A stretch of 64,000 bases of DNA, from NCBI RefSeq assembly GCF_006345805.1, contig NW_021832604.1, forward strand, positions 1 to 64,000. The letters are read 5' to 3'. Positions 1,086-46,008 of the stretch are shown one piece after another. The DNA comes from Octopus sinensis (Eukaryota). A program made the translations under genes and the position numbers. The notes beneath the pieces are model-generated. The model ran no database searches, was not told the DNA's origin, and was given only the letters and a program-made list of their open reading frames with translations. The first letter of the stretch is position 1. Each line of letters opens with the position of its first letter.

Positions 1086-1672
1086 TTTTATTTTATTTTC
1101 GTACATTGTAATAAAACCTCTATCACTTAAATAGATGACATTACTCATTCCATGTTCCAACTGTCCGAAATGAGTATAATCTGTTTTGTCAGTACATGAA
1201 GGTGATTCTCTTAGAGTACTCTCCTGACTACATTTCATCGTACTCACTTGGCTTGAATTCGATCAGACCGCAGTAGTAATCAAGCAAAGAAATAGCATAC
1301 TCATTCAACGAATAGAATTAGTTTTCCGCAATGAGGCGATTTGCATAATATTGACGCCAACTCCACAATTTCTCGTTTTTTTGATCAAGACAAAATACTT
1401 GTATTGTTGCTTTTCCTTTAAGACGTTCACTGGATCACCACACACAAAGGTCACCGATTTTTGTAGTCAAGATCCATTTAATGAAACCTTCCAGAGCTTT
1501 GCCCACTCTACTCAGCTGGACTAACAGAAAAATATATAAACAAGAACTAGCTATCATAAACGTATTTAGATACGCAATTTTATCAAATTACTAGCTCAGC
1601 AGTTCGCTTCGCTCACTGCGAGCTAGCTCCTGCGGAGGCCCTGCTCGCTACGCTCGCAGTTTCCTTAAATAA

Positions 1673-2540
1673 CTATAAATTTATGTAGATATATAAATGC
1701 GACCTGCTTTGATATAACCTTATTCTAAGGCTGTGGATAAACGATGTTTGCAGTCCGTCCATCCTTGGCAAATATAAATAAATTTCTTTTCTACCTACCC
1801 TTGAGCACCCCACATACAGCTGGCCATGTGAAAAGCACTCGTTCTCTAAAAATAAGCCTACTACCTTTAAAGACTGTCCCTGGGCCTTGTTTATTGTCAT
1901 AGCAAAACTTATCTTCAGCGGAAATTGTAGTCTCTTAAATCTATCGCAGGCCCTTTCATGGTCCATAATAACGTCGACCGATTATATATTCTTTCTCTGC
2001 CAGGGATTTTCATTAATAAATCTAAATTTATATTAAGTACCTCATCATTAAGTGGAGCTAATATAGCTCGTTCACGCAGCCAGTCGAAATTCACGTAGTG
2101 TTCAGATAGTTCGGAATAGACGGCATTCAATAATTCTTCTGCTGTTTCTACGAAAATACATAATTCTTCCGGTAGCCTAATTTTCTGGTCGTGCATTTCT
2201 GAAGTGATTGCCCCATTTCCAATATCTAGAAGGATTTGTGGGAATATGCTATTAACGCCTTGTAAATGTGCATGTACATTTACATCTAAGCTTACCTTTT
2301 TCACGTGTGTCCACAAATATGACGATTTGAGGCAGGCATTCAATTCATCCGCAGGCGTCCCTCTTTGAATAATTGGCAGCGTCTGTCTAAAATCACCTGC
2401 CAATACAACTAATGCTCCCCCAAACAAATGGTCGCTACAATTCTTGATATCTCTATATGTTCGGTCAACTGCTTGAATGCGCCTTTATGAGCCATCGTAC
2501 ATTCATCCCAAACAAATAACCTAGAATGCATAATTCTATT
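1673..2540 (-). pseudogene. Helitron Pif1-family helicase fragments (internally deleted, frameshifted)
   Basis: FGGALVVLAGDFRQTLP and [22 protein letters not shown]...[14 protein letters not shown] motifs in two different frames. Confidence 0.88.
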
Positions 2541-3239
2541 ACCCGTAGTTGAGTCTAACAGCAGTCCTGACCTTGTTCAGCTGTTGTCTAAGTTCCCTCA
2601 CCATTTAAGCACATCTTCCCTCGTTTCTCTTTTTTGTTATATGGTTCATATTCTCTTGTTTGTTAACATTCTCAGATCTCTCTTTATAGGACATTCTTAT
2701 GATTTTGTAAACGCGAATCAGTAATTTATATTAAATTTTCTACGTAAATTTATTTAGTGAAATTTATGTAAAGTGTATTATCCAATCAAAGCCATTATAC
2801 TTAATTGCCTCTATGTTTAAAGGAATTGAAACTTTAGCATAATCGAACTTGTCTGTTTCGGTAAAGAAAATGATAATCAGCTTCATCTTTGTAGTATTAT
2901 AAGGAAAAAAATTAAAGCCTGTTAAATCAAGGAGATTTAAATATAGGCAAATTGAAATTTACATGACTAATTTAAATTTTATTTGCCTCTATCTTTTAAG
3001 AAATCTAAACAGTAGCATAATCGAATTTGTCAGTTTCGGCAGTTAAAAAGAATCAATTATGTAAATCTCTAATAATTTTTGCTTTTTCTTTTTAGTGGTT
3101 TTCAAAATCTGATAATTGCACAGTCTATTCATGGTCGATAACAATTAGAGCTTTTATTTTATTTTTTTTAACGAAAATTTAACAAAAAAGAATTTATGTC
3201 ATCGAAAAAAGATAGCTAAGCTAATTAATGGCCTCACGA

Positions 3240-4719
3240 GGCTTGAAGGTTGTGGAGGACCTCATCATGTGAGTCGAGGACTTTCTTGTCGTTCATTTTA
3301 ACAAAAACGCAAAAAATATTTTTTTTTATTTTGGGCTTGAAGGTTTTGGGGGACCACATCATGTGAGTCGAGGACTTTCTTGTTGTTCATTTAACAAAAA
3401 CGCAGAAAATAATTTTTTTTATTTTTTTTGCCTGAAGGTTTTGAGGGACCACATCATGTGAGTCGAGGACTTTCTTGTTGTTCATTTTAACAAAAACGCA
3501 GAAAATAATTTTTTTTAATTTTTTGGCTTGAAGGTTTTGAGGGACCACATCATGTGAGTCGAGGACTTTCTTGTTGTTCATTTTAACAAAAACGCAGAAA
3601 ATAATTTTTTTAATTTTTTGGCTTGAAGTTTTGGGGGACCACATCATGTGAGTCGAGGACTTTCTTGTTGTTTATTTTAACAAAAACGCAGAAAATAATT
3701 TTTTTAATTTTTTGGCTTGAAAGTTTTGGGGGACCACATCATGTGAGTCGAGGACTTTCTTGTTGTTCATTTTAACAAAAACGCAGAAAATAATTTTTTT
3801 AATTTTTTACCTTGAAGGTTTTGGGGGACCACATCATGTGAGTCGAGGACTTTCTTGTTGCTCATTTTAACAAAAACGCAGAAAATAATTTTTTTAATTT
3901 TTTACCTTGAAGGTTTTGGGGGACCACATCATGTGAGTCGAGGACTTTCTTGTTGTTCATTTTAACAAAAACGCAGAAAATAATTTTTTTAATTTTTTAG
4001 CTTGAAGGTTTTGGGGGACCACATCATGTGAGTCGAGGACTTTCTTGTTGTTCATTTTAACAAAAACGCAGAAAATAATTTTTTTTAATTTTTTGGCTTG
4101 AAGGTTTTGGGGGACCACATCATGTGAGTCGAGGACTTTCTTGTTGTTCATTTTAACAAAAACGCAGAAAATAATTTTTTTAATTTTTTAGCTTGAAGGT
4201 TTTGGGGGACCACATCATGTGAGTCGAGGACTTTCTTGTGTTCATTTTAACAAAAACGCAGAAAATAATTTTTTTTAATTTTTTGGCTTGAAGGTTTTGG
4301 GGGACCACATCATGTGAGTCGAGGACTTTCTTGTTGTTCATTTTAACAAAAACGCAGAAAATAATTTTTTTTAATTTTTTGCTTGAAGGTTTTGGGGGAC
4401 CACATCATGTGAGTCGAGGACTTTCTTGTTGGTCATTTTAACAAAAACGCAGAAAATAATTTTTTTAATTTTTTAGCTGAAGGTTTTGGGGGACCACATC
4501 ATGTGAGTCGAGGACTTTCTTGTTGTTCATTTTACAAAAACGCAGAAAATAATTTTTTTAATTTTTTGGCTTGAAGGTTTTGGGGGACCACATCATGTGA
4601 GTCGAGGACTTTCTTGTTGTTCATTTAACAAAAACGCAGAAAATAATTTTTTTTAATTTTTTGGCTTGAAGGTTTTGGGGGACCACATCATGTGAGTCGA
4701 GGACTTTCTTGTTGTTCAT
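3240..4719. repeat. Minisatellite, 16 units of about 95 bp, inside the Helitron
   Basis: Core ggaccacatcatgtgagtcgagg recurs at 3257, 3351, 3446, 3542 ... 4585, 4680; variation is mainly homopolymer length. Confidence 0.95.
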
Positions 4720-4830
4720 CAGGAAGGTTCTTAGAGGATATCAACCTTTTATTGTGCCTCATTTCGAATAACTACAAAAGGGAAGGTTTTGACAATTTGA
4801 TCTGGTTTTAACAATTTGAATGTGGGTGTG

Positions 4831-4874
4831 CACAGACAGACAGACAGACACACAGACAGACAGACAGACACACA
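4831..4874. repeat. (ACAG)n/(AC)n microsatellite near the Helitron 5' end
   Basis: acagacagacagacagacacacagacagacagacagacacacac read directly. Confidence 0.85.
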
Positions 4875-5523
4875 CCATACCATTTTATTATTAAGATGTC
4901 ATTTGTTAGTAGGTAAAAAATAATTATGTGAAGAGATATGACATTGTTGTCCGCAGATTAGCCAATGGTGGCTGCCATTTTGCATTTTTATTTAATTTTC
5001 GAAACTCTGTCGGTCCAAGTTTGTCAGATTTCTTTCCACTTCTGCTTTTCAGTTCAAGAAACAGAGCTGCTTAAAAGTTAAAATTTAAACCTAAATTATC
5101 TCTAGGCTGGAGGGAAATGCTGCGTGAATATTCCTCCAAGTCGATTCCTAAGAGTTTCCTTATTTCCAATGAAATAAACTTAACTAAATGTTATCAAAAA
5201 ACTTTGATCAGATTCCAATCTCTGATTCCAATTTTGGGTAAATTTGAGGCGTGCATGTGAATTAGTTTTCGGCCATTTATGTAGTTATTCTCAAAGCATT
5301 CCTTTCGATTAATCAAGCATTGATTACTGCCAACTCAGGGTGGCCAAGTTCTGTTTTGACCCAGTCTCCCACCTGCTTGATAGACCAGTCAATGCAATCT
5401 GGTACACTAACTAATTCGTGCTGAGACATTACAATAAATATAAGCTTTGTCTTGGGAACAGTTTTCTGACTATTTTATATAGTTAAATTATTTTAAATAA
5501 AATAAGTGTCTCTTTGTGAGTCA

Positions 5524-6718
5524 ATGTCCGCAAATAAACCATTCAACGAAATATTTTTAGAATACAGAGAAATAATAAACAAATTTAAAAAGTAGATAAA
5601 TAAAATAAATTCTAGACGATCAAAAAGAGCAAACAACAGCGACCTCATAAAACAAATGTCTGCCCTAATAAAGTCCTTCCACACCAGGGAGAATTCGACG
5701 ATGACTGTGCCGCATTTCTCCACTACCTAAGCCACGAGTAGTCCAATTTATCATAAAATTAGTTTTCAGGCAGCCTGTTCTAAGGAAGTATTGTCCGACC
5801 CGACAGATCTTATAGAAGCAGCCAGGAAATACATATCCCACGACACGTACTGCAGAATGAATCGTTTCATAACATTCGGAGAGGATCTGGAGAACGCAAT
5901 ACAGTGCTACAATCAGTGCATTCAAGTTGATTTTGTCATCATTCGGCAGATCTTCATTGCGGCCAAAAAAGCCTAAAAGTATTTCAATTCAGTTTGGAAA
6001 TCGGGCACTATTTGATGGTACTAATATTACATTTTATTAGAAAATTTGCCACTTTCCGGATGCTCTGAATCATCTGTACAAAGCATTGGAATACTCGGAG
6101 AGTGTATTCTAGTATATAACCCAGTCAGGTGGTTGTCGAACAGATATTTGTAAAGCAGTTGATAATAGAGTGCCATGTGGATATCAGTTGTGTGCTGACT
6201 GACCCAATTAGACGAATTCGAGAGTGCTTTCGACGTGGTTAATTCTGTTTTTGAGTTCGAGGGAGTGTCGAACAAAGCATTGCTGTACCCTCTCTGTGGA
6301 GTACTCGTCCAGTTGGAAATATCGAGAGTGCTCCTCCTCTGCATTGTGAATGTATTCAGTAGGCTAATTGGCCAGAATTGCTCTATTCCTGTGTGGGAGA
6401 AGGATTGTGCGATTTTTGGTAAATATTGTGGGAGGACAGTCGAGGAGGACCTATCGAGAGGACCCGAAGGTTGTGTTCTGAATATGTTTGACAGATAAAC
6501 TCGTGTCGACTGAGGTGTACCAGTATTTGAAGACTCTTTTGGTAGAGGAGATGGGAGATTGGTAGGTGGCCGTGGCTGATTTGTCTGTCGATGATGTCAA
6601 ACAGGTCGAGGAGTTGTTTGGACCTGATTTAACGCGCACTCATTCTTTACTGTTTTCTGTACTCAAGGAGAAGATGCACAACAGATTAGTCCACGTTATT
6701 AAAAAACCAAGAAATTAA
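5524..6718 (+). pseudogene. F8A1: HAP40/F8A homologue, copy 1, with two 1-bp deletions
   Basis: Same gene as 27669-28866, but lacks one C near 5680 (ttccacaccag vs ttccaccaccag) and one A near 5965-5970 (6 vs 7 A, giving gcc taa). Could be sequencing error. Confidence 0.6.
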
Positions 6719-6791
6719 CCTTTTTATTTTTAATTACTTATTTAATTAAATAAATTATATTTTAATTGTGGTTTCTTGTGTGTCACTAGGA

Positions 6792-7087
6792 ATGGACTAT
6801 GCCTCGCTAAACTTTTGTATCATCACTCTACTGTGGGTTCTCTTTCTAATCATTTCGTCCATTTTCCTGAAGAAATCTCGCTAGAAGCTGTACGTTATGT
6901 CCCCTAATGTGTTTAGAATGATAATGATTCTACTCGCCATTACTGCGATATGTTGCTACATTCAGTACAATCAGTTTTAATTAACGAATTTAGTTGGTTG
7001 GTCACGTGGCTAATACAGCTGAACCCACTTGTGGCACCTCAACTGTCAAAACTCCATTTATATGCAATCAAAAGAGGGTGGAGATGA
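6792..7087 (+). pseudogene. ATP6V0E: V-ATPase V0 subunit e, copy 1, premature stop
   Basis: In-frame TAG at 6882-6884 where copy 2 has TAC (29031-29033). Confidence 0.75.
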
Positions 7088-7293
7088 TCTTGTTTTACTG
7101 TCTTTAATTAAATTATTAACTACAACTCTTTTTAACTATAAAATACTAATTTTAAACCATTCAAAGGTCCACCAACATTTAGTAATATTTGTCACCACAA
7201 TAATCAATATGAGTTTTACCTTTTAATATAATTTAAAACTTTTTAAAATTAAAACTTTAAATTTTATAAAAACATTATTCACGTGTGAACAAA

Positions 7294-8402
7294 ATGAAGC
7301 TGGACAATCAGTCTATGCAATGTCTGCGCGTCGCAAAAGTATTCAAGGAGAACCGCAAGGAAATAAATCACATGGACTTTACCAAAAACGGGGAGATTCT
7401 CATCACAAGCGGAGATGATGACCAAATTTCAATCTACGACTGCAACAACGGAATGTATTCCTCCACAAAACTCTCCCAGATTCCAGAGACTTTTAAACAG
7501 CAAGAAATATGGGGTGTCTCTAATCCAATACACTCACGCGGAGAATACGGTCATCCACGCATCCACAAAACTGGACGGTCCTCCCCCTCCATCAATTTAT
7601 AGACAGTGTTCGGTACCTCTCACTCCACAATAATCAGTATATTCGCTATTTTAGTGGACATAGTGATCGGTAGGGAGAATATTGTTTATTTTAGAGTGAC
7701 CTGTCTCCAGATGTCCCCACTTGATGATCTCTTTCTTTCCGCCTCCCTCGACAAGACTGTGAGGATTTGGGATCTCAAGTCTCCGAATTGCCAGGTTTGA
7801 GTGTTTGGGGAAAGTAGGGAATGCTGACTGTCCCTGACTTCCCCGTGGCCGCGATCGACCCCGAAGGACTCATATTCACGGTGGGATATCGGTCTACACT
7901 CAAATTTTATGATTTGCGATCGTATGACAAGGTTTGTTTGATTTGTTCATTTGGAGGGTCCTTTCCTCACTTCGGACATCAAGGAGACCCCCGAGTGGAC
8001 GGGCATTAAATTCAGTCCCGACGGGAAAAATATTTTGGTCTCCACTTCCGGGTGCTGTCATTTCCTTGTGGATGCATTCCACGGGACTTTCAAACACGCA
8101 TTTGAGGCATTTCTATTTGGTTACTCGTTTAGGGATTTACCAACAATCATTCAAAAATTGAAGCAGATTTCACCCCGGACTCGCAGTATGTGATTTCTGG
8201 TTCTACTGACGGTGGATTGCATTCCTGGAACGTCGAGTCGGGGGTCAGGACTTGTCAAATCAAGTCGACTTTGCCTAACGAGTGTGTTCGTCTTGTCCGC
8301 TTTAACCCCAAAATGATGCTCTTGGCTGCTGCTTCTCTACAACTTGTTGTTTTCTTTTTTCATTTTTAGGGATTTTATCTTTCGTATTTAGAAGATGAGT
8401 GA
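7294..8402 (+). CDS. WDR82: WD repeat protein 82 (Swd2), multi-exon, copy 1
   Basis: [63 protein letters not shown]; frame restored by 23-26 nt introns. Confidence 0.93.
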
Positions 8403-9399
8403 CTTGTTGGAATATTTGAAACAAAGTTTTTCGCTTTTTTGAGTGCGCGCGTAGTGACGAAACGAATTAAAGAAACAATATTTATAAAGATTAAATATTT
8501 AAGACGGTTTTATTTTATTGCTCCACGATTTTTTTGGAGAGTCTTTGTCGCCGTCGAGTTCGTTGACGTCGTTTTTAGGGAGAAATAGCTTTTTTATTTT
8601 AGACAAATAGTTTTTTTATTTGTTCCTATAAAATGATATTATTTGTGTACTTTTATCGATGTCATCTCTGACAAAATAGTTTCGTCCTTTTCAGTAACTG
8701 GTTGACATTGCGTGATGTGACTTTTCTCAAAATTCATTTGTTGATTCTGATCGAACAGTTCTATCAACCTCTTAATTATATGTTTTATAAAACAACGTGA
8801 CATTACATCATTTGCTCACATTTAGCGAAATAATTCTGAAGGATCAATTATTAGTAGAATATAAAGAATTATTGACTTGACTTTATAATATGCGTAATTA
8901 GCTGCTTATGTACTTTATTAAATGAGAGTTTCTTGATACATTTTGTTATAGAAATTGCACTTTCTAAAAGTTATTTTACGTGCTTTCTAGAAGAGTGGGG
9001 AATTGTATTCCTTGATCATCTCGAAAGTTAACAATTTTCATTTTGTCATGTGATTTCTAAATGGGTAAGAACATTTTTAACCTATGATGAACAGATTATG
9101 CTCTCTGAGATTCAATTAGAACCTGCGTTCCCCAAAAAGAAATCAAATATAATTTCTGTTAAGTAAATATCGGAGATTTCATAAACACTGAATTGTTAAT
9201 AACGTTGATCCTTGAAAAATACTGTCAAAATTATTTTTACTTTATTTGGAAGGAATTTTGTAAACATATAAATTGAACTTTAAGGCAAGTTTGTTACATA
9301 GTTGAATATTTCCATTCTAATTAAGAAAATGGAAAAGGCTTCTTGGCCATTCAACAGGACCAACTGTTAAAAGACCAAGACCTTAGCAACCAAAAGCAC

Positions 9400-11199
<1,800 letters not shown>

Positions 11200-11760
11200 G
11201 ACAACCTCCTTGTTTATTAATATTTTTAAATATTATTCTAATCTTTTATTCAATTTTAAAAATAATATAAAATATTGTTTAATAAATGTTTTGACGTTCT
11301 TTTATAAATTGAGATTAATTTATATAATTGAACTTTTTAATTATTAGTGCGTACATTATTGACGCGTCTATTCTGCGTAAATAGTTGGCTATTGTGCTTT
11401 ATTTTCCGACCCCTGGGATTGTTTTGTGCCAATTTTTATTTTTTAAATATCGATTATCAATTAGGCTTATTTTCTTTATTGAGTTGTCGAAAAATTCGAC
11501 TGTCATGCTTAAGCATTATTTTTACACTCACTTTTTACATTTATTACTTATAAATCTTTACAGTAGTCTTTGAACTTGTTCAGCCAAATCCCCTATTAAG
11601 TGAGTTTTTCAAAATTCGATTCAAAAAGATCTCCTCTTCTGCATTCTCAATATTTTGTCACTTTTTATTGTGTCCCTTTGTTATTATACATATGGATTAT
11701 TATTTTTTGATTTTTTGATTGCAATAAAATTGAATAAAATACACAATTTTATAATCATAA

Positions 11761-12670
11761 ATGTTTTTGTATAAAAGGCACGCTTATTCATAAATATATA
11801 GATTGCTGATTATCGCATCTGTCATCCTCTTAGGAATCATTCTTTATTTTCAGAATATTGTCGTCCTCGGAAGAACTGACAGTCATCGACATGTCATATT
11901 TTGTATGATTTTAACATCAAAAAACAATTATAAAACCCGAGGACGTGCAGTCTTGGATACGTGGGGCAAAAGATGTGACAAGACATTTTATTTTGTCGGA
12001 AAAGTCATAGCGAACGAGTCCTTCATAACCTCGCTGAATATCAACGATGACTACGAACATCTCCCTTCAAAAACATACGGCGGACTGAAATATATCGAAG
12101 CCAAATTTCACGACGAATATGACTGGATTGTCAAAGCAGACGACGATACATATATTATTGTGAACAATCTTCGCCAATTCCTCGTTTCTGAAGATCACAG
12201 TCGCCCTGTTTCATTTGGACTCAAATTCTACAAATATTTCCCCAATGGATATTTCAGTGGGGGAGCCTCCTATATTTTGAGTAGAGAGGCTGTAAAGAAA
12301 GTGATTTCTGCCAATAAGGCAGAGGTAGTGGCTTAAATATACTCCCAGGTGAAGGAATGCAGCGCCAAGACAGGCATGGAAGACGTGGAAATGGGTCGTT
12401 GTTTAAATCGTCTTGAAATTGACATTAAATCCGACGAATCCCAGTTGCCTCGGTTTTCTTCATTTAATCTGATCGACACGTTTTCAAAAAATACACCGGA
12501 TTGGTATAAACAATTTCGAGAGTTGGACAAACACCCAGTTCGTCTGCTTTATTTTACTAATGCAGGAGCGCAATGGTGTGAGTCGGCATTTGATATCTCT
12601 CCACTACATCACCCCCAATTCCATGAGGACTATCGACTATTTATTAAATAATGTGAGCATTCGGAAGTAG
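11761..12670 (+). CDS. C1GALT1: Core 1 beta-1,3-galactosyltransferase-like (GT31)
   Basis: N-terminal TM segment, TWGKRCDK, DWIVKADDDTY, YFSGGASYILSREA, EDVEMGRCL, ISLHYITP; ATG joined by a probable GC-AG intron. Confidence 0.88.
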
Positions 12671-16204: not shown

Positions 16205-17183
16205 TTAGTTAAAGGCGTTTCGATTAACTGCCACTTGTGTTATGAAGGACGAATGGTTAGCATAAATGTCCATTCCAGGCACAAAGTCCATCCATTGGAC
16301 ACCCACTGCGTCATCCCCTGACAAATGCGTCATCCTCTATCACAACCATGATGGAGATTCAGCTGGGCGATAGGAGAGTTCCACTCGTCCGCATGATAGT
16401 TCACGGCCACTGTCTCTATCCAAGAATTGTCCGTGTTTCTGGGGTCATCCACATATCCTCGATAAATCTGGGTATCAGTGCTTTGGTAAAATATGCCTCC
16501 ACCCCATTCTGGAGTGACTCTTCGATAACTTTGTGGTTCATTTCAATGTTGGCAGCCTCCTCACAAAACTCTCGTTTTAAAGTGCAGGAAACTTGTTCGC
16601 CAGGATCGACCATTCCCTTAAATAGTTAATTAAGTGGAACCCCAGGGAGAGCCCAGGCCCCGCAGTCTCTCCTAATGATTGCCACGAATTGTAGAATGGG
16701 GAGACCCGAGTCATTATCAACAAGTACTTCATAATTCGAATCCCTTTTCCATCTGACTAAATGTTTAATATTTCCCGATTGGAACCGTGTCACGATTGGG
16801 TCGGCAGCATGATTTGGTCCCCATCTCCCCAGTCTTCCCCTCCCTACCAATCCTGTCCTCCCAACCGGATTACTACCACTACTACACACAATTTACAGAG
16901 GAATGTTATTTTCGGTCACATCAAAAGGACCCATATGACTAACTCGGTTAATTGACTTTTCTAGTGTGTTGAATACTATATTGGAAGTATCTCTGTGTTT
17001 TTATGACCACAAGAATAACTCTGTGTCGGCCCAGGGAGGATTGTCCTCCAATATGTGGGGGGATGTGTAGTATGGAGGATTGTACTCCGGCAATGACACA
17101 TTCCATTGAGCTGTAGCCCTGTCCAATGGAAAGCGAGAAATAAGTGAGCCCGGATATCGACAAGTGAGGCAGCGATAATGCAT
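16205..17183 (-). CDS. NUDT9: ADP-ribose pyrophosphatase
   Basis: YPGS...YNPPYYT...[37 protein letters not shown]|[34 protein letters not shown]. Confidence 0.93.
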
Positions 17184-19466: not shown

Positions 19467-22400
19467 TTAACTTAAAAATGTGTCTTCCTTCAAGGATTCC
19501 AACGAAGCTCGAAAATTGGGATTTTTTGCTTCAGGAACAAGTTCAATTTCATTTGTCAGCTAAAATAAAAATATCAGCCAAACCAAGGAAGCGTGGAAGA
19601 TTTTATTCCCCAACAACTCCAAAACCACCGTTCCCACTCCCCAGACGTCAATCTGTCGATATTCAAAAAACATAACCTTTTTAGAAAAGTGATGATATCA
19701 TTTTTCCAGATTTCCGGAGCAATTGCAGGATATTCATCACAGTAAATTACTTGTTTCTACTATTATTATTATAGCACTTTTCACGAAAGCCATAATGTTT
19801 ATAGCCCCGCATGTGCAACACAGTGAGATTCGAACCCAGGAACTTAAGAAAGCTACCAAGTATGTCAAGCACTGTACCATCAAGGCCCCTACGTTCAAAA
19901 ATACAGAAATATCAAAAATCTCAATTTTGATTTGTGTATTTAAAAGAAAGACTGTCTCTGCAGAAATATAGTAATGAATGAAATCACGAGAATGCTAAGA
20001 TACACACTTTGGCACAAAATACCCAAAAAATGAGAGCATTGATCAGCTGTTCGACATAATTGATCACTTCAAAGCATTTAAATTCACTAACCGTCATGCA
20101 TTCCCTCAAAGAATTCACTTTACCCATTATTCTGAGAAACATACTTTTAAACCCACTAAAGGCGACCGAAACGAAAACATCGTTAATCGAAACTCCATAA
20201 TAACCAAAGATATGCTGGTGAACAATATTCCTGCTGTGTACAAGATTTATTAGCGAATGGAGATCATTGGCCTCACTAACACAATGCTCAAAGATAAAAC
20301 TTGAAATCGACGCAGCGAATGATCTTCAATGTTCCCTTTTCGCTTTGAAATATTTGAATGCCAAACGAGGAATTTTTCGAAATGGACGAAAAGTCAATAG
20401 GTGAAAAAACAAAGTCCTAAACTCAGTCTTTGATAATTAAAACGGTGTCGAAAAACGATTTTTGAACGTTAAGATTTTGTGAATGAGTTGCACTCCAATC
20501 AATGATGCTTCCAAGTGAACAGATATTACTTGACCTTTCTGCCTTCGAAGAGGTCAGAAAAGTCAGAGTCTTGTCACCTGTTATCGAGGAAATCTTGACT
20601 GTGTTGTCATTCAACCTAAAATTCTCTGAATTAAAAATAACGTGAATTTTGCTTGCTCTAGAACAGAGGTTTCCAAATGGGGAGGCGCGCCTCCCTAGGG
20701 AGGCGTTGACTCGTGTCAAGGGAGGCGCGAAAAGTATTTCAGAAACATTTTTTAGAAAATTATATCTATGTAAAAAACGTGACTATATTCCGATAATAAG
20801 AGTTATTAATTTAAAAATTATATTTTTTCAAAAATTTATTTAATTTATTAGACAATTAAATAATTTTAACACATGAATAAATTCTTGAGTGGTTGCAAAA
20901 GAAAATTCACGAATAATAAAGATTTTGACGATGGTTCAAAAAATCAAAATGATTGGAATATAATCAATACCACTCCAAAGACAAGAAAATACTTTCCATC
21001 TTACTTATTGTTAGGAAACACCTTTTGCGCCATAGTGAACATTGAAGCAAACAAAGACATATTTGCTGAACATTTGGATTGTTTGTTGAAGCATTTTGCT
21101 CACTATTTTAAAGATCTCGACTGTAAAATGTTCGAATGGATACAGAATCCATTATTGATGAAGAAGATAATCAATTTGCATTGACAACTTTTGAAAAAGA
21201 AAAATTGATAGAATTGTCATGCGATACATTATTGAAACAAAAATTTGAGAGAGAACCGCTAATTTCTTTTTGGTTGAATGTAAGAACGGAATATGAAATT
21301 TTGTCGAATAAAGCAATGAAAGTTTTGTTGCCATTTGCTACTTCATATTTATGCGAAACTGGATTTTCTGCACTAGCTGCAATTAAATCTAAATATCGAA
21401 CTCGTTTAGTAGTGACTAATGAGCTAAGAGTAGCACTCTCTGCGATGACACCAAGATTTGAAAAACTTTGCGCCAAGATGGAAAAAAAATTATCTCATTA
21501 ACTTTTTGTTTTAAAAAATTGTTTTTGATAAAATAATAATTGTATTATATTATGGAATATAAAGGGAGGCGCAAGATTGTACTTTTTCTCTAAGGGAGGC
21601 GCGTAAAAAAAAGCTTGGAAACCTCTGCTCTAGAAGGTGATAACTCTCTACCGTTTCAAACACAACACTCTAAAAATGTGATAAGATAATCAGACCAGAT
21701 GGTTGTCTTCGGAAACTGGGGTCACTTTGCAAATGGACCTTCTCATTCCGTGAGTGCCTTGATATGTAAAAATCAAATATCACATATATCGAGCACACGT
21801 CCATGATGTAGTTCGAAGAAAGTTCTCTATACTATCTGGGCGAACTAAAACTAGATATATCCACATTACCGAATTGTTGAAAATTGAGCGATCCGCAATT
21901 CCCAAATCACCACTGAACCGAGTCAATACCATAATGTTCCTCAAAAGGGAAGACAATTTCCTAAAATGAATTGACAAAGTTAACTTCTCCGAAGGTCTGT
22001 ATTCAACGATGAGACTCAAGTGAGACTCGATTTTACGGAACTCGCCAATGATGCAGAATAGTACTACGAGAGTGGATGCACTCCAATATTCATCATTTCG
22101 ACCACTCACAGCCCGGTCCTTGACCAAAGCAACTGAGATAATCCCAAACAAAAACCCAATTCCTTCTTATCCTTAGTAGAAAAGTCCTCTCCGAGAGCGT
22201 AAGCAAAGGTTAGCACATTTATAGGGTTTACTATGTCGTACTGGTCCTCACTCAGAGCCTGGGCTGTCTCGTACCTGCATAGTCAGCGAATTTGTCACCA
22301 TTTTTTGCATAGAAGAGCGTGGTCCGTGTTTTCGGATTTGAGGTATTTATTATTCAGTCCACGTGCAAGAAGAGTGTAAATTTCAGGAGATTGACGAATT

Positions 22401-23961: not shown

Positions 23962-24601
23962 ATGAAACACAATGTTTTGGTTGGGTGTACGGGAAGTGTG
24001 GCCAGTACCAAGACTCCTCATCTTGTTGAACAGTTGATGGTTAAAGTTCAATCATATTTCCAGAAAATTGCAAACGTAAAACTTGTTGTTACAGAACACG
24101 CGTTGCACTTTTTTTCGAAAGATTCTGTGAAATGCCCAGTCTATCAAGACAGTGACGAATGGGTTGACTATCATTTTTGATACGGCAGAGGTGGGAAATG
24201 ATGGGGGACACTATTCTACATATTGATATCAGGAATTGGGCTACTCTCTTCTTGATTGCTCCACTCGATGCTAACAGTCTCTCAAAAATTAGTCACGGCC
24301 TCTGCGACAATTTACTTGTAGATTAGTATAATCAGTCCAGACCTCCATTGCTCGTTGTTGGCCTCCTGATAAGCCACTTCTCTTTGCGCCTGCCATGAAC
24401 ACGACAATGTGGGACCATCCAGCCACTTCCGAGGCTTTGGAAAAACTGCGGAATTGGGGATATGAGCTCATCCCCTGCATATATAAGCATTTGGCTTGTG
24501 GGGATACTGGTTAGACTTAGTTTTCATCTTCTCCAGGATTTGGGGCAATGGCTGAGGTGGATGACATTTGTAAACAAGTCTCGACTTTTCTTGAACGATG
24601 A
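23962..24601 (+). CDS. PPCDC: Phosphopantothenoylcysteine decarboxylase
   Basis: VLVGCTGSVA, VVTEHALHF, DSDEW, LHIDIRNWA, APLDANSLSKISHGLCDNLL, APAMNTTMWDHP, LACGD. Confidence 0.93.
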
Positions 24602-25900: not shown

Positions 25901-26458
25901 CCAGCGGGGGTCGTTGAGCTGACTTGTAGGCTCTCGACTATCCTTTCAACGACGTCAAAAAATAAGACCATCGGACGTGAGTCACTTAAAACTTTTATTA
26001 AAAATCTGGGCTGCGAAATATTTCCGGTATCCTCGTGAAATTCGATGAGAAATGAGGAAATGGATTTAGTGACTTGTGTATTGAAATGGATTTAATTACA
26101 ATTTAAGACCCAAATACATGGGAGACCCAAAAATCCCTAAAGTCAAAGGATTGTTTAGAAATTTAACCAGACGACTCAAGAAGCTTTTCAAAAATGAAAA
26201 ATTGTATAATAAAAATAAATTGATGAAATACATTGAAGAGGCTATCTATATAAAACGAAAAGCCTCCTCATCAATAAGTAGGCTGTTTCTTAAATATTTC
26301 TTAGGAGTTAGTCAATCCAGGGTATTGCTGGATTCCAGAATTTAATAATGTACTAGTAGAAAAAGACAGCATTGAACAAGAAATTCTAACAATGTCTCAC
26401 AATTTATTTACCCGCGACAAAATATGACCAAAATGTTGAATTTGGAAAAATGCAAAGA

Positions 26459-26531
26459 TACCCCGACTGGGAGTCGAACCCAGAACCTTTCGCGTGTAAG
26501 GCGAACGTGATAACCGCTACACCACCGAGGC
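26459..26531 (-). tRNA. tRNA-Val(TAC), copy 2
   Basis: One difference from copy 1 (acceptor G-C becomes G-T). Confidence 0.93.
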
Positions 26532-27668
26532 TTTCATTTTAATTTTCGTACATTGTAATAAAACCTCTATCACTTAAATAGATGACATTACTCATTCCAT
26601 GTTCCAACTGTCCGAAATGAGTATAATCTGTTTTGTCAGTACATGAAGGTGATTCTCTTAGAGTACTCTCCTGACTACATTTCATCGTACTCACTTGGCT
26701 TGAATTCGATCAGACCGAAGTAGTAATCAAGCAAAGAAATAGCATACTCATTCAACGAATAGAATTAGTTTTCCGCAATGAGGCGATTTTGCATAATATT
26801 GACGCCAACTCCACAATTTCTCGTTTTTTTGATCAAGACAAAATACTTGTATTGTTGCTTTTCCTTTAAGACGTTCACTGGATCACCACACACAAAGGTC
26901 ACCGATTTTTGTAGTCAAGATCCATTTAATGAAACCTTCCAGAGCTTTGCCCACTCTACTCAGCTGGACTAACAGAAAAAATATATAAACAAGAACTAGC
27001 TATCATAAACGTATTTAGAATACGTAATTTTTATCAAATTATGTCATTTGTTAGTAGGTAGAAAATAATTATGTGAAGAGATATGACATTGTTGTCCGCA
27101 GATTAGCCAATGGTGGCTGCCATTTTGCATTTTTATTTAATTTTCGAAACTCTGTCGGTCCAAGTTTGTCAGATTTCTTTCCACTTCTGCTTTTCAGTTC
27201 AAGAAACAGAGCTGCTTAAAAGTTAAAATTTAAACCTAAATTATCTCTAGGCTGGAGGGAAATGCTGCGTGAATATTCCTCCAAGTCGATTCCTAAGAGT
27301 TTCCTTATTTCCAATGAAATAAACTAAACTAAAAGTTATCAAAAAACTTTGATCAGATTCCAATCTCTGATTCCAATTTTGGGTAAATTTGAGGCGTGCA
27401 TGTGAATTAGTTTTCGGCCATTTATGTAGTTGTTCTCAAAGCATTCCTTTCGATTAATCAAGCATTGATTACTGCCAACTCAGGGTGGCCAAGTTCTGTT
27501 TTGACCCAGTCTCCCACCTGCTTGATAGACCAGTCAATGCAATCTGGTACACTAACTAATTCGTGCTGAGACATTACAATAAATATAAGCTTTGTCTTGG
27601 GAACAGTTTTCTGACTATTTTATATAATTAAATTATTTTAAATAAAATAAGTGTCTCTTTGTGAGTCA

Positions 27669-28866
27669 ATGTCCGCAAATAAACCATTCAACGAAATCTT
27701 TTTAGAATACAGAGAAATAATAAACAAATTTAAAAAGTAGATAAATAAAATAAATTCTAGACGATCAAAAAGAGCAAACAACAGCGATCTCATAAAACAA
27801 ATGTCTGCCCTAATAAAGTCCTTCCACCACCAGGGAGAATTCGACGATGACTGTGCCGCATTTCTCCACTACCTAAGCCACGAGTAGTCCAATTTATCAT
27901 AAAATTAGTTTTCAGGCAGCCTGTTCTAAGGAAGTATTGTCCGACCCGACAGATCTTATAGAAGCAGCCAGGAAATACATATCCCACGACACGTACTGCA
28001 GAATGAATCGTTTCATAACATTCGGAGAGGATCTGGAGAACGCAATACAGTGCTACAATCAGTGCATTCAAGTTGATTTGTGTCATCATTCGGCAGATCT
28101 TCATTGCGGCCAAAAAAAGCCTAAAAGTATTTCAATTCAGTTTGGAAATCGGGCACTATTTGATGGTACTAATATTACATTTTATTAGAAAATTTGCCAC
28201 TTTCCGGATGCTCTGAATTTTCTATACAAAGCATTGGAATACTCGGAGAGTGTATTCTAGTATATAACCCAGTCAGGTGGTTGTCGAACAGATATTTGTA
28301 AAGCAGTTGATAATAGAGTGCCATGTGGATATCAGTTGTGTGCTGACTGACCCAATTAGACGAATTCGAGAGTGCATTCGACGTGGTTAATTCGGTTTTT
28401 GAGTTCGAGGGAGTGTCGAACAAAGCATTGCTGTACCCTCTCTGTGGAGTACTCGTCCAGTTGGAAATATCGAGAGTGCTCCTCCTCTGCATTGTGAATG
28501 TATTGAGTAGGCTAATTGGCCAGAATTGCTCTATTCCTGTGTGGGAGAAGGATTGTGCGATTTTTGGTAAATATTGTGGGAGGACAGTCGAGGAGGACCT
28601 ATCGAGAGGACCCGAAGGTTGTGTTCTGAATATGTTTGACAGATAAACTCGTGTCGACTGAGGTGTACCAGTATTTGAAGACTCTTTTGGTAGACGAGAT
28701 GGGAGATTGGTAGGTGGCTGTGGCTGATTTGTCTGTCGATGATGTCAAACAGGTCGAGGAGTTGTTTGGACCTGATTTAACGCGCACTCATTCTTTACTG
28801 TTTTCTGTACTCAAGGAGAAGATGCACAACAGATTAGTCCACGTTATTAAAAAACCAAGAAATTAA
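27669..28866 (+). CDS. F8A1: HAP40/F8A (huntingtin-associated protein 40) homologue, intact copy
   Basis: EIFLEYREIINKFKK|RSKRANNSDLIKQMSALIKSF, CAAF, DLIEAARKY, FGEDLENAIQCY, QLEISRVLLLCI resemble HAP40 (DFLARYRLVSNKLKKR, LTEAARLF, YGEPL, RCEVSRVLLLLL) as I recall it. Confidence 0.75.
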
Positions 28867-28940
28867 CCTTTTTATTTTTAATTTACTTATTTAATTAAAT
28901 AAATTATATTTTAATTGCGGTTTCTTGTGTGTCACTAGGA

Positions 28941-29236
28941 ATGGACTATGCCTCACTAAACTTTTGTATCATCACTCTACTGTGGGTTCTCTTTCTAATC
29001 ATTTCGTCCATTTTCCTGAAGAAATCTCGCTACAAGCTGTACGTAATGTCCCCTAATGTGTTTAGAATGATAATGATTCTACTCGCCATTACTGCGATAT
29101 GTTGCTACATTCAGTACAATCAGTTTTAATTAACGAATTTAGTTGGTTGGTCACGTGGCTAATACAGCTGAACCCACTGGTGGCACCTCAACTGTCAAAA
29201 CTCCATTTATATGCAATCAAAAGAGGGTGGAGATGA
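28941..29236 (+). CDS. ATP6V0E: V-ATPase V0 subunit e, intact copy
   Basis: Three exons: ...KKSRYKLMIMILLAITAICCYIHWLVTWLIQLNPLVAPQL...GWR*. Confidence 0.9.
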
Positions 29237-29444
29237 TCTTGTTTTACTGTCTTTAATTAAATTATTAACTACAACTCTTTTTAACTATAAAATACTAATT
29301 TTAAACCATTCAAAGGTCCACCAACATTTAGTAATATTTGTCACCACAATAATCAATATGAGTTTTACCTTTTAATATAATTTAAAACTTTTTAAAATTA
29401 AAACTTTAAATTTTATAAAAACATTTTTTTCACGTGTGAACAAA

Positions 29445-30553
29445 ATGAAGCTGGACAATCAGTCTATGCAATGTCTGCGCGTCGCAAAAGTATTCAAGGA
29501 GAACCGCAAGGAAATAAATCACATGGACTTTACCAAAAACGGGGAGATTCTCATCACAAGCGGAGATGATGACCAAATTTCAATCTACGACTGCAACAAC
29601 GGAATGTATTCCTCCACAAAACTCTCCCAGATTCCAGAGACTTTTAAACAGCAAGAAATATGGGGTGTCTCTAATCCAATACACTCACGCGGAGAATACG
29701 GTCATCCACGCATCCACCAAACTGGACGGTCCTCCCCCTCCATCAATTCATAGACAGTGTTCGGTACCTCTCACTCCACAATAATCAGTATATTCGCTAT
29801 TTTAGTGGACATAGTGATCGGTAGGGAGAATATTGTTTATTTTAGAGTGACCTGTCTCCAGATGTCCCCACTGGATGATCTCTTTCTTTCCGCCTCCCTC
29901 GACAAGACTGTGAGGATTTGGGATCTCAAGTCTCCGAATTGCCAGGTTTGGGTGTTTGGGGAAAGTAGGGAATGCTGACTGTCCCTGACTTCCCCGTGGC
30001 CGCGATCGACCCCGAAGGACTCATATTCACGGTGGGATATCGGTCTACACTCAAATTTTATGATTTGCGATCGTATGACAAGGTTTGTTTGATTTGCTCA
30101 TTGGGAGGGTCCTTTCCTCACTTCGGACATCAAGGAGACCCCCGAGTGGACGGGCATTAAATTCAGTCCCGACGGGAAAAATATTTTGGTCTCCACTTCC
30201 GGGTGCTGTCATTTCCTTGTGGATGCATTCCACGGGACCTTCAAACACGCATTTGAGGCATTTCTATTTGGTTACTCGTTTAGGGATTTACCAACAATCA
30301 TTCAAAAATTGAAGCAGATTTCACCCCGGACTCGCAGTATGTGATTTCTGGTTCTACTGACGGTGGATTGCATTCCTGGAACGTCGAGTCGGGGGTCAGG
30401 ACTTGTCAAATCAAGTCGACTTTGCCTAACGAGTGTGTTCGTCTTGTCCGCTTTAACCCCAAAATGATGCTCTTGGCTGCTGCTTCTCTACAACTTGTTG
30501 TTTTCTTTTTTCATTTTTAGGGATTTTATCTTTCGTATTTAGAAGATGAGTGA
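29445..30553 (+). CDS. WDR82: WDR82, copy 2
   Basis: Near-identical to 7294-8402. Confidence 0.93.
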
Positions 30554-30639
30554 CTTGTTGGAATATTTGAAACAAAGTTTTTCGCTTTTTTGAGTGCGCG
30601 CGTAGTGACGAAACGAATTAAAGAAACAATATTTATAAA

Positions 30640-30956
30640 GATTAAATATTTAAGACGGTTTTATTTTATTGCTCCACGATTTTTTTGGAGAGTCTTTGTC
30701 GCCGTCGAGTTCGTTGACGTCGTTTTTAGGGGAAAATAGCTTTTTTATTTTAGACAAATAGTTTTTTTTATTTGTTCCTATAAAATGATATTATTTGTGT
30801 ACTTTTATCGATGTCATCTCCTGACAAAATAGTTTCGTCCTTTTCAGTAACTGGTTGACATTGCGTGATGTGACTTTTCTCAGAATTCATTTGTTGATTC
30901 TGATCGAACAGTTCTATCAACCTCTTAATTATATGTTTTATAAAACAACGTGACAT
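30640..30956 (-). CDS. Hypothetical protein exon(s); also at about 8500-8810, with a 1-bp deletion there
   Basis: Open frame IIKRLIELFDQNQQMNSEKSHITQ...; no family recognised. Confidence 0.25.
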
Positions 30957-33227
30957 TACATCATTTGCTCACATTTAGCGAAATAATTCTGAAGGATCAA
31001 TTATTAGTAGAATATAAAGAATTATTGACTTGACTTTATAATATGCGTAATTAGCTGCTTATGTACTTTATTAAATGAGAGTTTCTTGATACATTTTGTT
31101 ATAGAAATTGCACTTTCTAAAAGTTATTTTACGTGTTTTCTAGAAGAGTGGGGAATTGTATTCCTTGATCATCTCGAAAGTTAACAATTTTCATTTTGTC
31201 ATGTGATTTCTAAATGGGTAAGAACATTTTTAACCTATGATGAACAGATTATGCTCTCTGAGATTCAATTTAGAACCTGCGTTCCCCAAAAAGAAATCAA
31301 ATATAATTTCTGTTAAGTAAATATCGGAGATTTCATAAACACTGAATTGTTAATAACGTTGATCCTTGAAAAATACTGTCAAAATTATTTTTACTTTATT
31401 TGGAAGGAATTTTGTAAACATATAAATTGAACTTTAAGGCAAGTTTGTTACATAGTTGAATATTTCCATTCTAATTAAGAAAATGGAAAAGGCTTCTTGG
31501 CCATTCAACAGGACCAACTGTTAAAAGACCAAGACCTTAGCAACCAAAAGCACATCACCCCGATTTAATTATTCACGAAAATTGTTCCCCGCCCGTCCCG
31601 CACTTGCGTTGGTTCCAGAATCCAACATCGGGAAAAGCTGAGAAAGATCTTGAGGATTGTTGGAATCACATAATTAATTACCCTAATTAACTTTTGGTGA
31701 TTCTTGGGTTAAATGATAATAATTTTCATTCTAAATCAAAACAACGACTTGATCATTGACTTTGACGGGTCACTATTTATTTTGTGTTCTCTTAACACAC
31801 AATTCGTCCAGATGCTCTCTCCATCCTGCAATATGATGTCCGATTAGATATACTCAATTACTTCAGTCCAATTCTCGTGTTTGAATTCCGTACTTAACTT
31901 TTTATGTTCCGTTCTTCACTCCTCTCCATGTTAATTTTGTAACACCGTCGTCCCTTCTAGAGGTTTTTATTGACTCACAGATTCTGAGCCTCTTTTCTAG
32001 CACTTTTGCATTATCTTGTATTTGCCTAGCAGTTCTAAGGAACTCTTTTTTCTTAGATTTTCGGTATCCATGCTTTTATCGTAGTTTCACTTTTAGTTCT
32101 TATCTTGCGTCGGGCTACCTTCACTTTCGAACTCCTTTTTGAGTTTTGCCACTTGATTAATTGTATCCACTCATTTTCCTCAAAAATTGAGAGGTTTTCG
32201 AAAGCACACCGAGCAAAATAAATTATATTCGTGACCTCAATCATGCTTTCTAAATGATTTGATTAGAAAAATTCATGAATCGCCGCATTTATTCCGATTA
32301 AAATCACCCTCTTAATTTGCGCTTTTTTGTGGGTTTCTTTGCATTTTTGGAGTCATTTGGACAATCCGTGTTCCAAGCATCCACCTTATTATAACATATC
32401 CTAAATATCGAAACTTCTGCTTTTTGAAACCCTTTTCTAGAATCCAATTCACTTCTGAGCATCTCCTCTTGGTTGCAGCCTTGCTATTAATATGTTCCCT
32501 TTTAATTGAAACTTTGAACTATTAGGGGCCATATTCTAAAAAAGTTCTTTTTATTTACCTGATTCATCGTTGCCTGCAAGCACATGAGGCTAGCGAGTTA
32601 GTCCGGATTGCTTATACTTTTGGTTCTCTTTACCAAGGAGAACTTGGTTGTATTTATGTTTGGTTTTTAAGAGTTTCCACAGGTAAGTTAACAGGAATGG
32701 AATCATTGCCTTCAGTTGACACCAACATGCTTCCACCACAAGAAAATAATGATCCACACTTCCTAATATTCGACATCTTTCATTCTAAATGCGACTCCAA
32801 AAGTCAACAATCCGAAATTGACAGGTTTTAATAATTACGGCAAGAGAAGATAGCAAAACAATACTAGTCGGTTTAAATGATCTTTTAGATATTTCAATGA
32901 ATTTTGCAGCTCTCGAAATAAAGAAAATTCGACGGTATTTTACGTTGTCGAAAAAGATTTGAATAAATGGTTGCTGGTAGAGGTGGTATTCCTGGGATTG
33001 CGCCTGGACTGCCCTTTTACGTCAGAAAATGGCTTTTGTAATCTTATATACAAATTATATGTTTGATTTCTCGCCAATATTAAATCTAAAACTGTTAAAG
33101 ATTCTAAATTTAAATATATTAATTTCAATAAATAATTTTTTCCTATTTTAAAAAATAAACACATAAATTTTCCAACGTGTAGTTGAGACTTTTCTTGCGT
33201 TAAACCGAATACAACATTTCTACTAAA

Positions 33228-35665: not shown

Positions 35666-35779
35666 TTTGACTTTGTTGATTGTTTAATTATAGCGTGTTT
35701 ATGGATTTCTAGTTGATTGCCTTCTGTAGGATATTTCTAGAAAGTGATTAATATAATACAAACATAGTACAACAAATTA

Positions 35780-37805: not shown

Positions 37806-37811
37806 TGCTCT

Positions 37812-38108
37812 CGCCTTCGGGGCGGCGGAAATATAGAGAACTCTCGGAGCGATATCTATTCGCCCCTGTTGCTGTCGAGACTTCAGGGGTCATTGGGGAA
37901 AAGTCTTTGACTTTCCTCTATAAGCTCGGACGTCTGATCTCTCTGAAGAGAAATGACACACGCGAGACGGGCTGGCTCCTTCAGAGGATTTCCCTTGCCA
38001 TCGTACGAGGAAACTGTTTCTCCATCTACGAAGCGGGGAAGTCCTCTAACTAACTTTAGTTTCATTTTGATTTTTCTGGTTAAATAAACTCTTTGTATAA
38101 AAAAAAAA
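37812..38108 (+). mobile_element. CRE-like 3' fragment with poly(A)
   Basis: KYRELSERYLFAPVAVETSG...WLLQRISLAIVRGN; A-run 38098-38108. Confidence 0.85.
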
Positions 38109-38140
38109 GTTTCAGAGAACAAGTAAAGATTAAATTTGAG

Positions 38141-39720: not shown

Positions 39721-40592
39721 TTAGTAAAAAATTAAGCACCAATATGTAATTTAAACGATCTAATTAGATCAGATATCCGAATATTAAAACCTAATTATTT
39801 ATCTATTTTTATAAAATTAAGTACATTAATTGTCCTTTTTAGTATAATAAATCCTCTCTTTTTTGTCATCTTAATGACCGAAAAAAATATTGACTGAGCA
39901 TATGACCTATGACGGCATTCAGCTCAGGCGAATTTATATCGAAATTTTCTTTTTGATAAAAAATGATTTTAATTTTTTAGCTATCTTTGATGCTTCTTCA
40001 GTATTCACAAAAGAATTTTTGGAATTTATTTATTCTAACCATAAAAAATCGAAGAATCAGAATTGATATTAAGCTAGTCTTCCATCTCATCTAATTTGTA
40101 AATGTTCGAAAGGAATTTTAAGTAAAGTCCGACCCCGGTTTGTCCCAGACCTCAGCCTGGATACACCCTACTTTTCGGGCTAATTTTTAGAAATAAGTAA
40201 TTTTTAATGGCAGTTATCTCACGACCCTGGTCAGCTTTGTTATTTTTTTGTATTCGACGATCCTCAGGGAAAGAAAAATTGTGTTTCCTACCCTCTTACA
40301 GTCATAGACAGTCCCCTCATCGTGAATTCCGAATGCAAAAATTAGAGAAATATTAAATAAACAGAAATTAGAAAAATCAAAACAACTGATAAAACATAAC
40401 CTGCCATGTCGTCTCTTCATTCGAAACAACCAATCTGTTGAACAGGGAAAAGCAAGACTACATTTATTACAATTTTTTTATTTTAGTTCCTGTCAGCATG
40501 ACTAGACAGGACTTATCTGACAAAAGAATTTGCAAATTCTATTCCATCTTGCAACAACACAAACTCTTTTAAAAATATTAAAACAATTCTTT

Positions 40593-45832: not shown

Positions 45833-46008
45833 CTGATTTGTTAAATCCATTTTGTCATTTAAATAAATACGCATTACTACCAATAGAATAGAGCAGTGGT
45901 TCCCAACCTGGGGTCCGCGAAACCCCAGGGTTCCGCGGAGCCAGTTTAGGGGTTCCGCGAAATTTATTATATTTATTTAATAATAGTTTTTAATTATTAA
46001 AATATATT

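Follow-up and report, generated by a model that had tools for sequence, protein, structure and literature searches.

How can a conserved protein be encoded where the reading frame is broken again and again? The question is raised by positions 7294–8402 of the 64,000-nucleotide (nt) stretch of contig NW_021832604.1 analysed here (the window), with the frame that opens at the ATG at 7294 interrupted repeatedly unless seven short segments (25, 25, 25, 23, 25, 26, and 24 nt) are removed, whereupon a 936-nt open reading frame (ORF) runs to the TGA at 8402. The 311-residue spliced product is an orthologue of WDR82/Swd2, with protein searches returning matches of 54–56% identity over 100% coverage (E ~1e-111) in Lingula, arthropods, Bugula, Nematostella, and vertebrates, all of the homologues being metazoan. 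A preliminary description of this DNA had read the segments as tiny introns with almost no splice signal beyond their terminal dinucleotides, recurring in nearly every gene and defined by length by a reduced spliceosome. All of the coordinates that it gave for them hold, with lengths of 23–26 nt. We consider it very probable that the introns of the window are U2-type (major) introns from an animal genome, reduced in length to ~25 nt whilst retaining their ancestral positions and phases, with a dicyemid mesozoan (Dicyema) the most likely source.

The segments were located with our own protein-to-genome spliced aligner, which permits GT/GC-AG introns of 15–150 nt under a flat length penalty and penalises GC donors more heavily. 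Guided by five, and then by eight, diverse WDR82 homologues, the aligner returned exactly the seven segments, the sole exception being that the alignments of one or two homologues ended before the short last exon. An alternative donor at 8349 would shorten intron 7 to 21 nt, with the 24-nt version favoured in 7 of 8 alignments. A dynamic-programming (DP) gene finder relying on codon usage only mis-modelled WDR82 with four “introns” (23–117 nt in one run, 23–60 nt in another) and was discarded, and ungapped tblastn at permissive thresholds returned noise only.

Positional and phase homology was examined on WDR82, with the loci of Lingula anatina and Lottia gigantea fetched and their exon structures mapped. 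Both genes contain eight introns, of 129–928 nt, and each of the seven WDR82 introns of the window falls in the same column of the alignment, and in the same codon phase, as an intron of the Lingula and Lottia genes (column/phase 53/2, 86/1, 108/2, 142/0, 181/0, 233/0, and 305/0). WDR82 of the window retains seven of eight ancestral positions, having lost the intron at column 256/phase 1, and remains intron-dense, with seven introns in 936 nt of coding sequence (CDS). The peculiarities singled out in the preliminary description, namely a GC-AG intron, a GAG acceptor, a purine-rich 3′ end with no pyrimidine tract, and the donor GTCCTC, are all present (Table 1), and both the GC-AG intron and the GAG-acceptor intron lie at conserved positions. 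Judged from the sequence, the seven segments are genuine spliceosomal introns whose excision is predicted, and their termini, the restoration of the frame, and the positional homology in WDR82 all place them among putative U2-type introns.

A second WDR82 copy bears on the same point. The two copies differ at seven sites, with no insertions or deletions, and encode identical proteins. Four differences fall in 173 intron nt compared with three in 936 exon nt (Fisher p = 0.014), and each of the three exon differences is a synonymous change at a third codon position. The introns of WDR82 evolve faster than the flanking exons, and the restriction of exon changes to synonymous sites, together with the excess of intron changes, is the pattern left by purifying selection acting on the spliced reading frame.

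Segments of ~25 nt resemble both Paramecium introns and the shortest internal eliminated sequences (IESs) of ciliates, and could in principle be IESs, assembly frameshifts, lesions of a pseudogene, or the introns of a ciliate gene. We regard this as barely conceivable, with GT/GC..AG rather than TA..TA termini in 54 of 54 introns of the census described below, positions and phases in WDR82 identical to those of animal introns, and exon changes between the WDR82 copies that are synonymous only. Ciliates use a variant genetic code, and in Paramecium the depletion of introns whose length is a multiple of three (3n) is linked to nonsense-mediated decay (NMD). The code of the window is standard, with 2,283 nt of modelled CDS containing neither TAA nor TAG in frame and with the NUDT9-like gene ending in TAA; introns of 3n length show no deficit (17 of 54; length modulo 3 of 17/17/20), and all homologues are metazoan. 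The standard code, orthologues that are metazoan, and intron positions shared with animals exclude a ciliate origin.

The two WDR82 copies lie in a segmental duplication, with 746–1590 and 4896–9547 matching 26188–27041 and 27041–31701 at 98–99.1% identity (99.1% for the 4896–9547 and 27041–31701 segments). The duplicated DNA contains a tRNA-Val gene, a multi-intron gene of no assigned family, and WDR82, and the first copy is split by ~3.3 kb (1590–4896) carrying PIF1/Helitron-like ORFs and a 95-bp tandem array. The duplication could be a true recent event, or the two copies could be uncollapsed haplotypes. The low-confidence model of the multi-exon gene at 27801–28713 has five introns of 23–25 nt and no Pfam or PDB match.

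Similar introns recur, as previously proposed, in nearly every gene of the window. Homology-supported micro-introns were found in six further genes, these being the second WDR82 copy and the copine, NUDT9-like, PPCDC, CSTF3, and WDHD1 genes, with one low-confidence intron in a GCLM-like gene (Table 1). Homologues from protein searches and PDB sequences served as guides, with the guides for PPCDC and GCLM being human sequences entered by hand. The spliced PPCDC model matches human PPCDC (1qzu, residues 19–195) with E = 1e-59, independently of that guide, and covers positions 2–159 of the 162 of Pfam Flavoprotein; for the GCLM-like gene, the search returned no PDB relative. Removal of the micro-introns likewise brings the NUDT9-like (against 1q33), CSTF3, WDHD1, and copine genes into frame with their homologues. 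The LINE, PIF1/Helitron, and hAT transposon ORFs of the window are uninterrupted.

Table 1. Genes, micro-introns, and transposon ORFs of the window (positions are those of the whole stretch; intron lengths in brackets).
Feature	Position	Strand	Details
WDR82/Swd2 orthologue	7294–8402	+	8 exons (161, 98, 67, 100, 114, 150, 213, 33 nt), 7 micro-introns, 311 aa, stop TGA
WDR82 intron 1	7455–7479	+	25 nt, GTATTC..CAG, phase 2; column and phase of Lingula/Lottia intron 1; aligner 8/8 homologues
WDR82 intron 2	7578–7602	+	25 nt, donor GTCCTC, phase 1; conserved position
WDR82 intron 3	7670–7694	+	25 nt, GT-AG, phase 2; conserved position
WDR82 intron 4	7795–7817	+	23 nt, gtttgagtgtttggggaaagtag, purine-rich 3′ half, phase 0; conserved position
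WDR82 intron 5	7932–7956	+	25 nt, GAG acceptor, phase 0; conserved position
WDR82 intron 6	8107–8132	+	26 nt, GC-AG, phase 0; conserved position; picked 8/8 though GC penalised above GT-AG
WDR82 intron 7	8346–8369	+	24 nt (3n, in-frame TAG), phase 0; conserved position
Second WDR82 copy	29445–30553	+	lies in the segmental duplication (99.1% identity); all 7 introns shared, protein unchanged; 3 synonymous changes in exons, 4 changes in introns
Predicted multi-exon gene upstream of each WDR82 copy	5650–6565, 27801–28713	+	ab initio models differ between copies
Copine gene	9411–11226	-	model ends uncertain
Copine introns	9775–9796 (22 nt), 9919–9944 (26), 10055–10079 (25), 10348–10364 (17), 10460–10483 (24), 10774–10795 (22), 11043–11065 (23)	-	10460–10483 of lower confidence
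NUDT9-like ADP-ribose pyrophosphatase	16205–17183	-	aligned against 1q33; stop TAA
NUDT9-like introns	16318–16346 (29 nt), 16468–16502 (35), 16617–16640 (24), 16753–16785 (33), 16873–16896 (24), 16993–17019 (27)	-	16468–16502 or 29 nt with GC donor; 16993–17019 or 18 nt
GCLM-like gene	17.26–17.96 kb	-	one lower-confidence intron in census; guide-only model
PPCDC (phosphopantothenoylcysteine decarboxylase)	23962–24601	+	introns 24040–24063 (24 nt), 24163–24188 (26), 24318–24340 (23), 24510–24536 (27)
CSTF3/suppressor-of-forked orthologue	33228–35503	+	15 micro-introns, 17–27 nt; 3′ end undefined
CSTF3 introns supported 5/5	34072–34097, 34180–34202, 34313–34337, 34455–34479, 34696–34719, 34826–34852, 35297–35320, 35416–35440	+	
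WDHD1/AND-1 (Ctf4) orthologue	42675–45836	+	8 high-confidence introns of 23–26 nt, ~6 lower-confidence
WDHD1 high-confidence introns	42740–42763, 43068–43092, 43208–43233, 44012–44034, 44308–44330, 44500–44524, 44646–44670, 44973–44995	+	
Intron-free transposon ORFs	35737–38065 (-), 1676–2484 (-), 21127–21498 (+), 47568–47843 (+), 55–59 kb		
C1GALT1/Fringe-like galactosyltransferase	11794–12670	+	long first exon
C2H2 zinc-finger gene	59781–60230	+	
RasGEF-domain gene	61876–63041	-	

A census of 54 introns was assembled, 42 of them of high confidence, which for WDR82, WDHD1, copine, and CSTF3 means that most homologue alignments agree (at least 3 of 4 spanning the site), and for PPCDC and NUDT9 a single unambiguous guide alignment. 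Lengths range from 17 to 35 nt (mean 24.7, median 25, standard deviation (SD) 2.9), with 47 of 54 introns falling within 22–27 nt, and the probability that 42 of 42 high-confidence introns would be at most 33 nt long under the flat prior of the aligner is ~1e-36. The termini are GT-AG in 53 introns and GC-AG in one, a count that is in part made by the method because the aligner behind most of the models allowed only GT/GC-AG. A variant that also accepted all other termini, heavily penalised, was applied to copine, CSTF3, and both ends of WDHD1; in copine it favoured one non-canonical segment, and in CSTF3 it suggested a few. The best supported of the latter (4 of 5 homologues), a 19-nt segment at 35031–35049, resolves to a canonical 22-nt GT-AG intron at 35025–35046, and the other three, each proposed by one homologue, were excluded.

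The claim that these introns carry almost no splice signal stands for the classical consensus. Outside the GT dinucleotide the donor holds 0.65 bit, with ~0.3 bit in total at positions +3 to +6; position +3 is T in 24 introns, A in 17, G in 11, and C in 2, positions +4 to +6 are uninformative, G occurs at +5 in 19 of 54 (35%), and a single donor of the 54 matches GTRAGT. There is no 3′ polypyrimidine tract, with pyrimidines making up a fraction of 0.60 of the last 10 nt and 0.55 of the first 10, the U-richness being diffuse and some introns being purine-rich at the 3′ end. Signatures of U12-type introns (AT-AC termini, or a /GTATCCTT donor with a TCCTTAAC branch site) do not characterise the set, with ATATCC or GTATCC in 0 of 54 donor hexamers and CT[AG]A in 3 of 39 introns.

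The claim fails, however, for the total information. G precedes the donor at exon position -1 in 27 of 54 introns (50%), compared with 25% of exonic decoys, and the acceptors (25 CAG, 21 TAG, 4 GAG, and 4 AAG) hold ~1.4 bits outside the AG, chiefly as a pyrimidine at -3, found in 85% of introns and 33% of decoys. On the sense strand the intron interiors are richer in T than in A (39.9% against 25.5%, p = 2e-9), with a GC fraction of 0.35 compared with 0.46 in CDS. Adenine is enriched at +17 (23 of 49 introns) and at -8 (27 of 49) and depleted from -3 to -6, with an A at one or more of positions +16 to +18 in 46 of 49 introns (p = 3e-8), and a YTNAY-like motif is present in 16 of 39. The termini described as unconventional are likewise real but less unusual than was suggested, with the GC-AG intron the only one of its kind in the census and the GAG and AAG acceptors a minority (8 of 54, 15%). 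GC-AG introns are an ordinary minor variant of the U2 type.

In the three fully modelled genes, 40 exonic GT..AG pairs, the decoys, fit the same length rule as the 14–16 true introns, or ~2.5 per true intron. The true introns more often have G at -1 (64% against 25% of these look-alikes) and a pyrimidine at -3 (86% against 33%), contain more T (0.40 against 0.24), and are lower in GC (0.36 against 0.50). An in-frame stop is present in 9 of the 17 3n introns, so that retention of the other eight would create no premature stop, and since 3n introns are not depleted, and stops, in only 9 of 17, are not enriched, NMD is unlikely to be a general safeguard against retention.

From these features we propose that the spliceosome would recognise each intron as a unit (intron definition) that is very short, rich in U, and poor in GC. 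The 5′ site may be little more than (G)/GT(A/T), the branch adenosine probably lies ~16–18 nt from the 5′ end and 7–10 nt before the 3′ end, and the 3′ site would be the first (Y)AG past ~21 nt from the donor. The usual rule is “first AG downstream of the branch point”, and 47 of the 54 introns of the census end at the first AG that lies 21 nt or more past the donor. Near-fixed distances from 5′ site to branch adenosine, and from branch adenosine to YAG, would mean that intron length is set by them, and not by strong consensus motifs, with the compositional contrast with exons possibly supplying part of the missing specificity. The earlier proposal of length-based definition is supported to this extent, the distance rule fitting the introns of the window.

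In its strong form, that proposal would have the spliceosome lacking components (e.g., U1 proofreading of the 5′ site, SF1, or U2AF recognition of pyrimidine tract and AG), with introns defined purely by length and only the terminal dinucleotides mattering. Such a reduction would agree with the near-empty donor positions +3 to +6, the low frequency of G at +5, the near-absence of GTRAGT, the missing pyrimidine tract, the narrow length distribution, and one apparent GT..TG intron in copine, and the literature searched held no inventory of the dicyemid spliceosome. We nevertheless consider it rather unlikely, with residual positional and compositional signals separating the introns from 40 exonic decoys that fit the same length rule, and with the A at +16 to +18 and the preference for YAG pointing to ordinary branch-point and 3′-site chemistry. 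Furthermore, U2 small nuclear RNA (snRNA) and U2AF1/2 are reported to be conserved in myxobolids, whose introns are equally short (PMC13644364). Rfam found no snRNA in the window, where two tRNA-Val genes were the only RNA genes detected (Rfam, ARAGORN), and no splicing-factor gene is present; CSTF3 is a 3′-end processing factor, not a splicing factor. No loss of spliceosome components is needed, or shown, by the data of the window.

The copine segment deserves separate consideration. At ~10212–10234 on the minus strand, 22 nt must be removed to bring a conserved 12-residue motif into frame. The segment is intron-like, being U-rich with a GT start and an A at +16, and ends in TG (GTATTAATATTCCTCATTTTTG, or the same 22 nt shifted by 1–2 nt), with no AG within the permissible interval. 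A 44-nt “intron” proposed here by DP with a homology bonus, and by a profile aligner restricted to canonical termini, removed the coding 12-residue motif, and gave way to the 22-nt segment once the three frames were read and non-canonical termini allowed. A genuine non-AG acceptor is one reading of this segment; the gene may instead be decaying, or the sequence may carry an assembly error or a polymorphism here. Together with the GAG and AAG acceptors, it hints that a molecular ruler, measuring from the 5′ site or the branch point, might select the 3′ splice site, and that the demand for AG might be loose enough for non-AG acceptors to function. We think this improbable; were it true, sequence proofreading of the U2AF35 or U1 type may be weakened or lost, and dicyemids would offer a natural minimal-signal system for asking how little sequence the metazoan spliceosome needs.

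Several observations weigh against shrunken U2-type introns of a dicyemid as set out above. The copine segment, lacking an AG acceptor, implies either that the canonical rule is imperfect or that the assembly is in error there, and two homology-supported 17-nt introns (10348–10364 on the minus strand and 34911–34927 on the plus strand) fall below the main 22–27-nt distribution. The latter may be real introns at the lower limit or wrong local models in poorly conserved stretches. The assignment of the branch point is a statistical one, and splicing itself is inferred rather than observed, with no identical protein or contig in the searchable collections (for WDR82, a collection of 5.8 billion proteins). 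Additionally, the organism is deduced from the intron statistics, the GC content, and the absence of closer relatives among the protein matches, and not from a direct match.

A dicyemid nonetheless appears to be the most likely source, as the best fit to the intron statistics, to a window GC content of 37.2%, to a repeat-rich setting with many transposon ORFs, and to the best WDHD1 matches in protein searches, which are molluscs, a horseshoe crab (a chelicerate), and a brachiopod. The best matches are metazoan, with spiralians represented by several, and no orthonectid proteins are among the top matches for WDR82 or WDHD1. The same phenomenon could also arise in a myxobolid myxozoan, a parasitic cnidarian, and the identity of WDR82 to its Nematostella homologue (56%) is as high as to those of spiralians. 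Proteins of the myxobolid Thelohanellus kitauei are public, and a myxobolid query should find them first, yet no myxozoan protein occurs in the best 120 matches for WDR82 or WDHD1. Median introns of 22–27 bp and similarly reduced logos have been reported for myxobolids (PMC13644364); however, the GC content and the intron length of 24.7 ± 2.9 nt match Dicyema japonicum and D. acuticephalum, and not Henneguya salminicola (GC 29%) or T. kitauei (median 22), and we judge a myxobolid source very unlikely.

The remainder of the window holds further repeats. The transposon ORFs include a LINE endonuclease and reverse transcriptase that lie immediately downstream of CSTF3, a helicase of the PIF1/Helitron type, and fragments of a hAT dimerisation domain, with further retroelement-like ORFs also present, a set consistent with a repeat-rich genome. 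Tandem arrays occupy 3240–4719 (95 bp, 15.6 copies, 96% match) and 46009–47328 (68 bp, 19.6 copies, 97% match). A 2.2-kb repeat of 92.6% identity at 38103–40289 and 50510–52656, both on the minus strand, is a duplicated MFS transporter gene and not a transposon, with one exon matching Pfam MFS_1/Sugar_tr and the gene appearing SLC17-like by eye.

Introns of this class are known from other lineages. Those of Paramecium tetraurelia, the Bigelowiella natans nucleomorph, and Stentor are likewise 15–35 nt long within a narrow range, with a 5′ site of approximately GT(A), no branch-point signature, and a high intron density, the hosts being protists or a nucleomorph (PMC2483917, PMC2222250, PMC13644364). 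Among animals, Hadjez (2026) reports introns below 30 nt only in myxobolid myxozoans and D. japonicum (PMC13644364). The introns of the myxobolids H. salminicola, T. kitauei, and Myxobolus spp. share with those of the window a length below 30 nt, GTa and AG logos, and a weak run of A residues, in parasitic animals with reduced genomes, and differ in their cnidarian lineage, with medians of 22–27 nt and, in H. salminicola, the lower GC content (PMC13644364).

The closest likeness is to dicyemids, where the preliminary description had already noted very short introns. In D. acuticephalum, the comparison of cDNA with genomic clones by Aruga (2007) revealed 16 introns, 26.2 ± 1.9 nt long and conserved in position (PMC2222250), and Irimia & Roy (2008) described 41 introns of this species with a median of 25 and a mean of 24.93 nt (SD 2.51), its 5′ boundary, at 0.5 bits, being called the weakest known (PMC2483917). 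A survey of 40 D. japonicum genes by Ogino (2010; Gene 449:70) is cited by Zverkov (2019), who gives a genome-wide median intron of 27 bp for Dicyema sp. (PMC6543705), and Lu (2019) reports 6.2 introns per gene, a GC content of 36.7%, and 49% repeats for D. japonicum (PMC6736024), whose splice-site logos retain little but “GTa” and “AG”, together with weak A residues that stand at a greater distance from the AG where introns are longer (PMC13644364). The window agrees with these data in intron length, in the information of the 5′ boundary (0.65 bit against 0.5 bit), in the lack of a classical branch-point motif and pyrimidine tract, in the weak A residues before the AG, and in its retained ancestral positions, high intron density, GC content of ~37%, and repeat-rich character. 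Nothing substantive sets it apart, with the GT..TG candidate and the count of exonic decoys not found in the literature searched. The statistics of the window reproduce the published dicyemid numbers almost exactly, and the finding is thus correct but already known, weak-signal micro-introns being a published hallmark of dicyemid genomes and this an observation of a known oddity, not a new one. How a metazoan spliceosome picks such introns among look-alike GT..AG pairs is a question already posed (PMC2483917, PMC13644364). In practice, gene finders and aligners must permit introns of 17–35 nt here, as default settings make every gene of the window look frameshifted. Set beside these systems, the window is a clean local example of the shortest class of animal intron, with positions retained whilst length and consensus have collapsed.

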